Below are positions 22,001 to 25,000 of a stretch of DNA of 64,000 nucleotides, piece by piece. The position numbers and the translations under genes are program-made. Positions within the stretch are counted from its first letter, which is position 1. Each line of letters begins with the position of its first letter. This DNA is from Malacoraja senta (Eukaryota), in NCBI GenBank assembly GCA_038087875.1, contig CM075980.1, positions 930,001 to 994,000 of the forward strand. The letters run 5' to 3'. The notes beneath the pieces are model-generated. The model worked only from the letters and a program-made list of their open reading frames with translations, did not search any database and was not told the origin of the DNA.

Positions 22001-25000
22001 ATCAAACACCAAATAAGACTTTTTACATTAGTTTAAAATTAAATCATGCATAAACTTCATTGTAAGTATTCAAGCCATCTCCAAAAAGATCAGAGAAACA
22101 TTTGGTCAAGATGTTGTAATGATAATTAATAAGAATCTAGAATTTCATCCCTTGTATTCGATTTATATTTAACTTTGCCATTCATTTTTAAACGGGTAAT
22201 GACATTTAATAAGTACTATTTCAAATGTGTTAATCTTACAAGGTAATACAATTCAAAATTGATTTTTAACTTTGAAACTGTATTTGATGCAATTGTCTGA
22301 ATTGCTGTCAAGAAACATGTCCTCATAAGAGCATAGAACAATTTTGTTTCATAAAAAATGCATGTGTTCAGCATGCTGCTGATGTTGTTATGCTACCAAT
22401 GGTGAGTGAAAGTGATTCGATGTATTCATAAATGTTGACTGCTTCAAGCATCGAGTGAACTCTTTAAAAAAAAAATATATATATATATATATATATATAT
22501 ATATATATATATATGTAACAGTAGTCAAGCAATTATTGGTGCAGATATTTCTGTTAAAGCCCCAAATTCCCTTGTCTACTTTGTATTTATAAAAATGGTA
22601 GCTTTCAATGGCACTAATGTATTTAAAATAACATGGAATGCATTTGGAACAGTGCTCCTGCTGCCTGCTCTTGTGGGTGACAAGTATCTTGTCTTGGCTG
22701 TCTTGTCTGAGGTGGATTTTGTGTTTCTGGTGTGGCCAGTTTGTTTTCTGCTGTGTTGACTCATGTGGTTCTCTCCTGTCTTTAGATACCAGCCTGTTGA
22801 TATCATTCAACCAACCAATCATGTATTGTCAGCCTCAGTCGGGAATTCTGATTGGTGCTTTGTCACAGGCATCTCTGTTACCTCCACCAATGAGTCCTCA
22901 TGTAGAAAACCACCACAGCATCACCTGCAGAAACAGGGAATGCCAGGTGAATATTTGCCAACTGACTGGCCCATGGCCCTTGTGTTTCTTTTTTCTCTTC
23001 CAGAGCATGAACTGCTGTGGCAGGAGCTGAACAAACGTTTATTGGTTCAGCATTCTGCCCTGCCACCCGTCTTGAGGGCAGTTTCATCAGCATCAATACC
23101 AGCATCAGCACATGCATCAACACACACATCAGCACACGTTTGCTCCTTTCCCTGCGAGTCTGCCGCCCACTCTGTTCATGCCGCCCACTGCACCATCTAT
23201 GGTGCATCTAAGCAGAAAAGTGAGGATAAGAAGAGCATCTCTTGAATCCCCCTTTCCCCCTACCAAAGAAAATCCTTACATCTTTTTTGCCATAGTGACC
23301 ACGGGTTGGCTAATGTGGTCCTCAAAAACAAAGACACCAGTATCACTTTTTTTTCTTTTTCAATTGTCCTGTGATATACTTTGACCAATCAAAATGAATG
23401 GCCGCGTGTATATTTGAGCTATTTTATGTATATTCTGACTTGAACCTTCTTTAAATGAATTGCATCCTATAATGTGTTTAATGTTTGACTGTTGAGTCAA
23501 TTGTCCTATCTTAAAACGTCACCAATTGACAATAGTTGCAACAAAAACTGTTTCAGAACTTGATCGATAACATCAAGCCTTTATGAAGCATCCTTTAAAT
23601 AGAAAACCCAATCCAAAGCATTTGCAGGTGCATGGTCAAAAGACAGAGACATCCAATATCCTCTCTAGCCCTTGGAACCTAGCTCTTGTGCTTAATGCAG
23701 TGCTGAGAGTTTAAATTTCGGTTCACTACGTTTTACATCAAAATAAAATTATTGAATATGAGCTTAAAAATGCTTTTTGGCCAATGTGCACTAGCAAAAT
23801 GTGAAACACTGCAGTAGCCCAGTGTGGTTGAAGAAAGTATAATATATCCACAGTGCTGTTTTTATACATATTGATTCTGTGAACCGTAAACAGTATCGTT
23901 ACTTTAATCTCTGACACGCAAACACTGTTTCTCTAGAAGAAAGGGAATTGTGAATGTATGCTTAAAAACATCTTGTACCCAAAGAATCAGGCTTGTGTTC
24001 ACCTGCATACTGTCTTTAATCTGATTAGTATTTTTTTTTAAATATTGTATTTCTTCTGGTTTAAACTAATTCGGCACCTGTCTGTGCAAATTTAATGCAT
24101 GCCTACTTTTAAATGGATTGCCAACTTTTCCAAAAAGATTGTTTTTTAAGAATCAGTTTGTTTTTTCAGTATTTTTAATGCAAAAGCTATACCATGTGGT
24201 CTAATTATGGTCATAAAGAAGTGTGTGTATAATCTAGCACTGTATGTTTTTGTGATTAATGTTGTTTATACACACTAAGTGGCAGACATCTGGTAATGGC
24301 TATAATTAATGAAATTATGCATGTGTTCTATATACATAGTTATTATATTCAGCAACAGCTGCCATGCCAAATGGCTCTGTGTGAAGATTTTCCATTTCTT
24401 AATGTCCCTTAATTGTTTAAAGATGTAATATGTAGAAATAATTATTAAAAGCTGTTTGTTGATTTTAGATCATTTTAAAAATTGCTAATAGTTCATGCCA
24501 GGCTGAAAATGATCGGAATCCAATAATATTGATTAATAATTAGCCTATTTTATGGTTCAATTATTGCAACAACGGAGGATGTATTTATCTCTAGATGACC
24601 ACAGAACTTCACAATGATGGTAGAAAAAACACAAAATCTATTATAACTCGTTTTTCCTCTTCCTTTCAGTTTGAAAAGTATACACCAAAAATGGAAAATC
24701 CTTTCTATCGACATTCTAGTGTGAGTGTCCTCTATTTCTTGAGAACTCATTGTGCATTGATTACATCATTTTGATCAAGTATTATTTCATATGTTAAATT
24801 TGAGGTGTTTCCACTTGTGATTTCTAGCTCATCTGCAGTTCATCAAATGTTTCAATTTGCTTTTCGAGCAGAGACTGTCCAAAATAGATAGTCCATGTTG
24901 TAGTCCAATGTCATTGTGCATCCAAGGTATCCTTGGTGTTGAGGTGATTGCTTTCACGTTCAGACTGAGTATTTCCAGATTAATGCCAATCCTCTGAGAG

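Follow-up and report, generated by a model that had tools for sequence, protein, structure and literature searches.

Of the motifs in the AUTS2 family, the HX repeat is the one best conserved, and in AUTS2 it recruits P300. [quoted passage not shown] 2017, PMC5555464). In AUTS2, which is without 9a, the homologue of 9b is exon 9, and a short C-terminal isoform, AUTS2-C, has its start site inside that exon (Beunders 2013, reviewed in PMC9008325). A third system to be compared is that of the multi-CCAAT modules bound by NF-Y, which are direct repeats located in promoters, their boxes typically separated by Sp1 sites or E-boxes (PMC4889920, PMC4982600).

The DNA analysed here, a 64-kb window from the skate Malacoraja senta, contains 9a and 9b, the known pair of mutually exclusive exons of FBRSL1 (fibrosin-like 1, AUTS2 family). 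Searches by tblastn with the platypus and Amblyraja FBRSL1 proteins revealed that exons of the window are 98–100% identical to the fibrosin-1-like protein of Amblyraja radiata and up to 94% identical to platypus, identifying the locus as an orthologue of FBRSL1. Exon 9b encodes a peptide of the ELLRQELN...HX repeat type, its motif being mutated here to ELLWQELNK, and exon 9a encodes its own 9a peptide, which is 70–100% identical across jawed vertebrates. The locus matches zebrafish fbrsl1 (PMC5555464) in the gene itself, in the adjoining position of the two exons and in the alternative distal donor of 9b; it differs in that both zebrafish exons are intact and found in cDNAs, whereas the skate has a frameshifted, drifting 9b and a 9a-9b intron of just 57 nt. 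In an alignment of nine sequences, the intron segment immediately 5′ of 9a was kept in all non-mammals.

Table 1. Features of the FBRSL1 exon 9a/9b region, in positions of the window.
Feature	Position	Strand	Evidence or remarks
FBRSL1 exon 8	20447..20717	+	tblastn against platypus and Amblyraja FBRSL1; donor G/GTAGGT; 3′ end 20717
Conserved intron segment 5′ of 9a	22740..22785	+	TGTTTTCTGCTG..GACTC..pyrimidine tract..TTTAG; nine-sequence alignment
Exon 9a, 161 nt	22786..22946	+	AG acceptor to GT donor; 8-9a-10 in frame; productive exon
Predicted pre-mRNA hairpin, 5′ half of 9a	22792..22870	+	outer stem 10 bp; inner stem box 1 (CCAAUCA):box 2 (UGAUUGG)
CCAAT box 1 (AACCAATCA)	22815..22819	+	codons Pro-Ile (CCA ATC); invariant in 9/9 sequences
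CCAAT box 2, inverted (TGATTGGTG)	22851..22855	-	codons Ile-Gly (ATT GGT); invariant in 9/9 sequences
CCAAT box 3 (CACCAATGA)	22887..22891	+	codons Pro-Met (CCA ATG); invariant in 7 non-mammals
9a-9b intron, 57 nt	22947..23003	+	branch-point-like CTGAC 22962-22966, ~16 nt from 9a donor
Exon 9b (HX-repeat exon), 198 nt here	23004..23201	+	inferred intact length 200 nt; out of frame as assembled
9b R>W	23018..23020	+	TGG replacing invariant R of ELLRQELN; alignment with L001 and six vertebrates
9b frameshift site	23080..23082	+	lacks, between 23081 and 23082, the AG that all other species have (GCAGAGTTT/GCGGAGTTC)
9b extension of distal donor	23202..23219	+	AAA/GTGAGGATAAG; 18 nt here, 21 nt in other species
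Exon 10	24670..24720	+	stop in second codon if entered from 9b as assembled

Exon 8 passes one base on to the exon that follows it, and of the possible joins from exon 8 to exon 10 only 8-9a-10 stays in frame in the window as assembled. In each of the seven other loci, 9b has a length of 2 mod 3; here 9a has 161 nt and 9b, if a 2-nt deletion is restored, 200 nt. The two are an equal-phase pair, in which each exon alone keeps the frame and both together shift it, and 9b as assembled fails alone. Among the matches listed for cartilaginous fishes other than sawfish, all 55 isoforms that include the region use 9a; this set includes isoform X1 of Amblyraja, Rhinoraja, Scyliorhinus and Callorhinchus, and members of clusters were checked directly. 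Similarly, 9a is the exon of every annotated skate isoform examined, and among the cartilaginous fishes examined annotated 9b isoforms occur in the sawfish only. Because only 8-9a-10 is in frame and the isoforms of relatives carry 9a, it must be 9a that serves the full-length protein here, as had been proposed in a preliminary description of this DNA. Dual coding of 9a was also considered: its +1 frame has no stop in 9/9 sequences but meets one as soon as exon 10 begins. A reedfish isoform (P0010) has an N-terminus that hints at a different exon spliced to 9a, and an exact look-up for this isoform gave no match. The entry P0020 was rejected as transcript evidence, being a gene model from the genome of a bat.

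The anatomy of the pair suggests how joint inclusion would be prevented. The 9a donor may be unable to join the 9b acceptor across so short an intron, with the putative 9b branch point so close to that donor, and inclusion of both exons would also break the frame. Smith and Nadal-Ginard reportedly described, in 1989, sterically enforced mutual exclusivity of this kind for exons 2 and 3 of alpha-tropomyosin. In both cases the downstream exon's branch point would lie too near the upstream donor and joint inclusion would shift the frame, whereas here the branch point is predicted from a CTGAC match only. The 9a-9b intron has its length of 57 nt in both skates and measures 73–244 nt in other species; in those with 104–244 nt the frame rule alone would enforce exclusivity, unlike in alpha-tropomyosin. 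Poison exons provide another comparison, since their inclusion leads to a premature stop and to unproductive splicing coupled to nonsense-mediated decay, and the classic ones are conserved as such. Exon 9b resembles them in having intact splice sites and in giving a premature stop, so that its choice would probably yield an unproductive transcript ending in exon 10; it differs in that this stop would stem from damage suffered recently by an exon that used to be coding.

We examined the damage to 9b by alignment with the sister-skate contig L001 and six other vertebrates (L001–L007), in all of which, as in the sawfish protein P0090, the exon is intact. In the window its 5′ and 3′ halves are open in two different frames, owing to a 2-nt deletion (GCAG^TTT after 23081 here, GCAGAGTTT in the others). 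Indeed, the alignment confirmed all three lesions noted previously, namely the tryptophan in place of the family arginine, the shorter linker (18 nt missing after 23056) and the frameshift at about 23081. Further replacements are AAA (K for N) at 23033–23035, within the otherwise invariant ELLRQELNN motif, and CAT (H for S) at 23051–23053, and 3 nt have been lost from the stretch between the two 9b donors, which is 18 nt long here. As had been described, 9b has in-frame ATGs at 23112, 23178 and 23199, which share the reading frame of exon 10. The 3′ half had also been called intact, and it does retain an open frame, but it carries a derived H>Y (23097–23099) inside the HX repeat and a derived L>F, and it has diverged from L001 as far as the 5′ half. 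Between the window and L001, compared by alignment and by a manual codon-wise re-alignment of 9b, divergence is 0.6% in 9a (1/161 bases), 3.5–7% in introns and ~7.6% in each half of 9b, which differs by four indels besides substitutions; the split of derived 9b events between the 5′ and 3′ halves is not significant (P ~0.14). Since divergence from the sister skate runs at the intron rate in either half, the decay is exon-wide, and the proposal that only the 5′ half decays, as untranslated sequence, is not supported. As assembled, exon 9b has the features of a decaying exon, a frame-breaking lesion that orthologues lack together with neutral-like divergence and replacements at invariant residues, and this HX-repeat exon would have lost constraint in this skate lineage.

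This account depends in part on the 2-nt deletion, which could be an assembly or consensus error in an exon that is intact and functional, rarely used and fast-evolving. Three other indels in the same gene clash with invariant protein motifs of constitutive exons: an extra base at 48906–48909 splits TSP/YNRT in the last exon, and the invariant KNRHSN is replaced by EKQALH through a +1/−1 pair close to 48618 and 48634. Because these indels hit invariant constitutive sequence of FBRSL1, base-level assembly errors are evident, and single frameshifts in this assembly should not be taken as biology without a check of the reads. However, indel errors leave R>W, N>K and S>H and the 18-nt and 3-nt deletions unexplained, and the near identity of the adjoining 9a to L001 argues that local base quality is good. 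In addition, indels between the two skates are as dense in the flanking introns as in 9b, so that a real 2-nt deletion is expected in a neutrally drifting exon. Exact look-up of three open reading frames of the window, two of them spanning the frameshift, found no second record of the locus from this species. We judge the frameshift to be probably real, and an assembly error to be a serious but unlikely explanation.

The three CCAAT/ATTGG pentamers in 9a start at 22815, 22851 and 22887 and are spaced exactly 36 bp apart, as had been reported; they are real and ancient, having been kept for ~450 million years on the conserved codon pairs P-I, I-G and P-M. Box 3 is lost in both bats (PPPWG), where boxes 1 and 2 persist at their 36-bp spacing and the 3′ half of 9a has diverged. 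All three boxes fit the extended motif CCAAT[CG][AG], which has only 34 sites in the window; the chance of any three such sites lying ≤80 bp apart somewhere in 64 kb is 0.025, and that of an equally spaced triple of plain CCAAT is 0.044. The further CCAAT box reported at 23385 is also present. A wider cluster extending beyond the exon (22396, 23385) was rejected, as the density outside equals the background and these boxes are absent in other species, in which no conserved flanking CCAAT box was found.

Silent sites are conserved across the whole of 9a, where 35 of 46 silent third positions (76%) are invariant. The three that the CCAAT pentamers need are all among them, for which P = 0.44 under 9a's own background. 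With so many silent sites of 9a likewise invariant, the cross-species silent-site test found no CCAAT-specific conservation above the 9a background, and the suggestion that the boxes are kept beyond the surrounding constraint was not supported. Silent-site divergence is 0.15–0.33 in 9a as compared to 0.61–0.71 in 9b (Fisher P 2e-6 to 7e-3). This nucleotide-level conservation of 9a is not described in the zebrafish fbrsl1 paper (PMC5555464).

Such constraint most likely acts on the pre-mRNA, where it would steer the choice between 9a and 9b. A candidate agent is a hairpin that the first 85 nt of 9a would form, with box 1 paired to box 2. The window sequence is predicted to fold with a free energy of −24 kcal/mol (z = −2.3), and of four other species L002, L004 and L008 gave the same minimum-free-energy fold (z of −2.9, −1.7 and −1.0), while the fourth, the other bat, L005, retains just the inner stem of box 1 with box 2 (z −1.1). 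Pairing holds in 207 of 207 cells; one change is compensatory (A-U>C-G) and three are wobble-compatible, and 12 of 500 shuffles match the observed pairing. The fold of the whole 278-nt region is unremarkable (z = −0.17), and it is only in its first 90 nt that 9a stands out. These figures are suggestive, and only suggestive, of the predicted fold. Two other RNA candidates were discarded, one being a single sub-threshold mir-16 match from Rfam in the upstream intron, taken as chance, and the other the long-range intron/exon complementarities I1 and I4, which by eye are not conserved in other species. Taken as a whole, the explanation we favour, at slightly better than an even chance, is that this is the known 9a/9b pair with 9a productive, 9b drifting and the constraint on 9a exerted at the RNA level.

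The boxes could also be an intragenic DNA element bound by NF-Y, an enhancer or alternative promoter that is independent of the state of 9b and adds to the silent-site constraint of 9a. Their fit to the motif, invariance, rarity and spacing are consistent with this, and boxes 1 and 2 survive in bats despite the diverged 3′ half of the exon. However, that survival coincides exactly with the hairpin region (columns 7–85), the same bases are explained by exon-wide constraint and an RNA hairpin, and there is no CpG island (CpG observed/expected 0.05–0.24). We consider such an element improbable. Highly improbable is the idea that 9a has a dual use as coding exon and NF-Y platform (internal promoter or enhancer), kept for ~450 million years and in skates driving a short isoform so that upstream 9b could decay.

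The full scenario of the preliminary description is about as improbable. It takes the boxes of 9a for an NF-Y promoter of a short C-terminal isoform, with the 5′ half of 9b as 5′UTR and a start at 23112, 23178 or 23199. The three boxes do fit CCAAT[CG][AG] and are invariant in non-mammals, their triple is rare within the window (P ~0.025), and 36 bp, centre to centre, is a preferred distance of NF-Y-bound double boxes (PMC4889920). In the preferred explanation this match of spacing is treated as coincidence. Moreover, the start of human AUTS2-C lies within the exon 9 HX repeat, with translation after the repeat and a distal donor adding seven residues (PMC9008325), and 9b likewise has in-frame methionines after the repeat (ATG 23178, 23199) and a distal donor, at 23219, of the kind that adds 6–7 residues. 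The zebrafish RNA-seq models that begin inside 9a and 9b also agree with it, but their authors themselves suspected truncated cDNAs (PMC5555464). Against a promoter inside 9a, conservation of the pentamers does not exceed that of their surroundings (P = 0.44), the region is CpG-depleted, the flanking boxes are not conserved, and no conserved TATA-like element was found in the 57-nt 9a-9b intron. Unlike the reported NF-Y modules, which are direct repeats, adjacent boxes here are oppositely oriented, and the two direct boxes are separated by 72 bp, a distance outside the peaks reported (PMC4982600); they also sit in a CpG-poor coding exon with no known start site downstream. A transcript starting at 22900–23006 would meet ATGs at 22940, 22973 and 23007, all preceding 23112, and two of the three open reading frames of 77–94 codons that overlap ATG 23112. 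These would interfere, in a difference from AUTS2-C, unless transcription began downstream of 23007, where alone the leader is free of upstream ATGs. The 3′ half of 9b drifts as fast as the 5′ half; Met 23112 is missing in L002 and bats, and Met 23178 in teleosts and bats. A start site is known for AUTS2 exon 9, whereas FBRSL1 9b is not known to have one in any of the cartilaginous fishes. A promoter with a short isoform is thus an unsupported and improbable reading, and an NF-Y promoter is a less likely cause of the constraint on 9a than control at the pre-mRNA level. Finally, four frame-disturbing indels in ~2.9 kb of coding sequence might make the whole gene copy a young pseudogene or null allele, all four being real, but this has hardly any probability, given that its exons are 98–100% identical in protein to Amblyraja FBRSL1, that the last exon stays open for 309 codons past the shift without stop codons, and that FBRSL1 is a single-copy developmental gene.

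On the favoured explanation, of a productive 9a and a drifting 9b under RNA-level constraint on 9a, the choice between the two exons decides whether FBRSL1 contains the HX repeat. Annotations suggest that the HX exon is hardly used by cartilaginous fishes generally, and if FBRSL1 has dropped this exon in a vertebrate lineage, the 9a form would be sufficient for its essential roles. The silent-site conservation of 9a, together with the candidate hairpin, offers a concrete handle on the mechanism by which 9a or 9b is chosen.

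A vertebrate AUTS2-family gene lies on the plus strand, and the window covers its 3′ two-thirds; the named relatives are all FBRSL1. We placed its exons by tblastn with a platypus fibrosin-1-like protein (P0003) and Amblyraja radiata isoform X5 (P0111), and Amblyraja proved 98-100% identical to the window exon by exon, which makes the source a skate near that genus. The adjacent alternative exons 9a and 9b, the second of which encodes the HX repeat, are already known as a pair from zebrafish fbrsl1, where cloned cDNAs contain them as mutually exclusive internal exons and 9b can be lengthened by 21 nt (7 residues) through an alternative, more distal donor (Kondrychyn et al. 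2017, PMC5555464). Splicing of exons 8-9a-10 keeps the frame; in the assembly as it stands, exon 10 brings a stop whether it is joined to 9b or exon 9 is skipped altogether. Fragmented LINE reverse-transcriptase ORFs occupy 35849-37280 on the plus strand (Pfam RVT_1, E = 2.8e-11 for 36204-36605), in the intron directly after the exon at 35692-35778, and a short interspersed repeat, one frame of which translates to ...QHLWRE...., recurs at many sites through the introns on both strands (for example at ~8230, 14200, 16850, 25540, 42560 and 61050). Upstream of 9a, a (TA)n microsatellite of ~45 nt (22464-22510) is not found in the sister skate (contig L001).

FBRSL1 features in window coordinates; lesions of 9b are relative to contigs L001-L007 and sawfish protein P0090
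Feature	Position	Strand	Basis or detail
Exon	~15700-16059	+	tblastn P0003/P0111
Exon 8	20447-20717	+	tblastn P0003/P0111
Exon 9a	22786-22946 (161 nt)	+	AG acceptor, GTGAAT donor; tblastn P0003/P0111
Exon 9b	23004-23201; second donor 23219	+	two reading frames as assembled; 3′ part ends TAPSM
Exon 10	24670-24720	+	tblastn P0003/P0111
Exon	25976-26083	+	tblastn P0003/P0111
Last FBRSL1 exon	end at 49833	+	tblastn P0003/P0111
9b, R>W (TGG) at invariant R	23018-23020	+	L001-L007, P0090
9b, N>K	23033-23035	+	L001-L007, P0090
9b, S>H	23051-23053	+	L001-L007, P0090
9b, 18-nt deletion	after 23056	+	L001-L007, P0090
9b, frameshift by 2-nt deletion, GCAGAGTTT to GCAG^TTT	after 23081	+	L001-L007, P0090
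9b, H>Y inside HX repeat	23097-23099	+	L001-L007, P0090
9b, L>F		+	L001-L007, P0090
9b, 3-nt deletion	distal-donor extension	+	L001-L007, P0090
Box 1 (CCAAT)	pentamer from 22815	+	codons CCA ATC (P-I)
Box 2 (CCAAT, inverted)	pentamer from 22851	-	codons ATT GGT (I-G)
Box 3 (CCAAT)	pentamer from 22887	+	codons CCA ATG (P-M)
Fourth CCAAT pentamer	23385		outside 9a

Among cartilaginous fishes 9a is plainly the main exon, with the qualification that annotation varies with the tissues sampled. Leaving the sawfish out, we collected 61 further isoforms from Amblyraja (X1, X2, X5-X8), Rhinoraja, Narcine, Mobula, Hemitrygon, several sharks and Callorhinchus; all 55 that cover the 9a/9b region contain 9a, and the remaining six lack the region or are short fragments. 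Among the isoforms listed, subject to the same variation of annotation, 9b appeared only in sawfish, in a search where a 9b like that of the sister skate would be expected to score ~124 bits. This usage supports the earlier suggestion of a full-length protein here without the HX repeat. Searched against 1.8 billion representative proteins, the 53-residue 9a peptide finds matches at 70-100% identity, including platypus, bats, hyena, eels and reedfish. A Pristis isoform (X14, P0084) splices 9a straight to exon 11 (RECQ|FFPPYAP), skipping the 51-nt exon 10, and in a 722-aa Erpetoichthys protein (P0010) an N-terminus ending ...GPGVVGW runs directly into the 9a peptide; this N-terminus matched neither exon 8 nor the intron upstream of 9a in the species examined and may derive from an alternative first exon that splices to 9a.

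We compared 9b across seven contigs containing both exons: the sister skate (introns 93-96% identical), a sequence nearest to amphibians (L002), four teleosts (L003, L004, L006, L007) and a bat (L005). The exon is intact in all seven, reading ELLRQELN(N/A)R(F/L)LVQS..LLRAEFHQH..HTHQHTF.(P/S)FP.. and ending APP(M/L) except in the bat, and the sawfish protein also carries it. Against this set the lesions first described, a W for R, a shorter linker and a frameshift near 23081, were all confirmed. With sawfish as outgroup, the APSM ending and long HX repeat of the window are ancestral, and the shorter HX repeat, FASFP and APPM of the sister skate are derived. After codon-wise realignment of the HX region, where MAFFT had misplaced a 15-nt repeat indel, the two skates differ at 1/161 bases in 9a and by 3.5-7% in introns, as compared to 6/78 bases in the 5′ half of 9b and ~8/105 in its 3′ half, with four indels within 9b. 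Because both halves diverge at the intron level, 9b as a whole drifts at the intron rate. Decay confined to the 5′ half, as had been proposed, is therefore not borne out; window-derived events, ~5 in the 5′ part and ~2 in the 3′ part, have a binomial probability of ~0.14. A run of 40 stop-free codons is expected at ~3% lineage divergence and is no evidence of selection.

The 2-nt deletion could instead be an assembly or consensus error, as three further indels in the same gene almost certainly arose in the consensus. In the last exon, after ...VVRATSP, the frame is shifted by one extra base within TCTCCCATAC (48906-48909; window 48900-48912); the next 309 codons are open and 98.7% identical to Amblyraja, and most likely the assembly miscounted a short run of C here. 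Similarly, a +1/-1 pair (G gained near 48618, A lost near 48634; window 48612-48640) turns KNRHSN into EKQALH. Of 13 proteins compared, ranging from elephant shark to platypus, 12 have KNRHSN unchanged (KSRHSN in Hemitrygon), and the conserved peptide is still legible in the +1 frame of the window. The assembly is therefore unreliable at the single-base level, and exact-sequence look-ups with three window ORFs retrieved no other record from the species. Indel errors, however, cannot make the three replacements at invariant 9b residues, the 18-nt and 3-nt deletions are beyond them, and 9a, only 57 nt away, is near-identical to the sister skate. Therefore, relaxed constraint on 9b stands with or without a real 2-nt deletion, and given that relaxation the deletion itself is rather probably real.

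Silent differences amount to 0.15-0.33 in 9a (skate, amphibian-like sequence and teleost) versus 0.61-0.71 in 9b, despite strong conservation of the 9b protein (Fisher P 2e-6 to 7e-3). The pentamer positions bear out the description of three CCAAT boxes 36 bp apart, with another beyond the exon; CCAAT[CG][AG] fits all three, only 34 such sites occur in the window, and the chance of any three falling within 80 bp somewhere in its 64 kb is 0.025. All three are invariant in seven non-mammals, and both bats keep boxes 1 and 2 and have lost box 3 (PPPWG). The boxes are thus conserved beyond amino-acid requirement, as had been claimed, but the conservation is exon-wide: with 35 of 46 silent third positions in 9a invariant, all three box-critical positions would be so with probability 0.44, leaving the boxes without a signal of their own. 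The +1 frame of 9a (22786-22946) is stop-free in nine species (window and L001-L008), including bats with a diverged 3′ half; continued into exon 10, it would end at codon two.

An RNA-level alternative to a promoter would be a hairpin in the 9a pre-mRNA, since the inverted orientation of box 2 allows it to base-pair with box 1. A single hairpin is predicted for the 5′-most 90 nt of 9a (-24 kcal/mol, z = -2.3; 4/200 shuffles as good), with a 10-bp outer stem (22792-22802 with 22861-22870) around a CCAAUCA:UGAUUGG inner stem. The same minimum-energy fold is predicted for L002 (z -2.9), a teleost (z -1.7) and one bat (z -1.0), and for the other bat (L005, z -1.1) the prediction retains just the inner stem between boxes 1 and 2. 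In an alignment of nine sequences each of the 23 pairs can form in every sequence (207 of 207 cells), a level reached by 12/500 shuffles; one change is compensatory (A-U to C-G in bats, a silent Ile change coupled to L>W) and three one-sided changes are all wobble-compatible. The conserved stretch of 9a in bats is exactly the hairpin region, and ~45 nt of upstream intron are conserved in non-mammals, a pattern typical of regulated alternative exons. With a single covariation event, it is suggestive, not proven.

Any DNA-level NF-Y role for the boxes is unlikely. NF-Y-bound two-box regions do show distance peaks at 24-27 and 36 bp (PMC4889920), the latter being the spacing of neighbouring 9a boxes, but a second study describes such modules as direct repeats with 31 bp between boxes (PMC4982600), whereas here each box is inverted relative to its neighbour and the direct pair is 72 bp apart, so this reading keeps only a low probability. 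The full proposal, in which such a promoter drives a short isoform and the 5′ half of 9b is only UTR, is very improbable: beyond the lack of box-specific conservation, 22250-23250 is depleted in CpG (observed/expected 0.05-0.24), CCAAT density outside 9a is at background in the window and nil to low near 9a in other species, and transcripts starting at 22900-23006 would meet ATGs at 22940 and 22973, opening 77-94-codon frames that overlap ATG 23112, which a third ATG at 23007 also precedes. Zebrafish RNA-seq models with a first base inside 9a or 9b do exist, and their authors suspected truncated cDNAs (PMC5555464).

Only 57 nt of intron separate 9a from 9b in both skates, against 73-244 nt in other species. 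A conserved CTGAC (22962-22966) follows the 9a donor by ~16 nt and precedes the 9b acceptor by 37 nt. Alpha-tropomyosin provides a precedent for exclusion by a branch point too near the upstream donor, and by analogy the 9a donor is probably too near CTGAC to use it as a branch point. Joint inclusion would also shift the frame. In bat L005 the intron is 73 nt (1093-1165; 1 mod 3), so that retention reads 9a, intron and 9b in one frame, and several mammalian predicted proteins (P0014, P0021, P0023) hold both exons through such read-through, which does not hold in skates with their 57-nt intron. For 9b, the acceptor, the branch site and the two donors match the sister skate, and if the frameshift is real, choice of 9b would yield an unproductive transcript. 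Two results go beyond published work: the marked conservation of silent sites in 9a, together with its candidate hairpin, and a skate's probable loss of the HX exon, set against 9a-only annotation in cartilaginous fishes.
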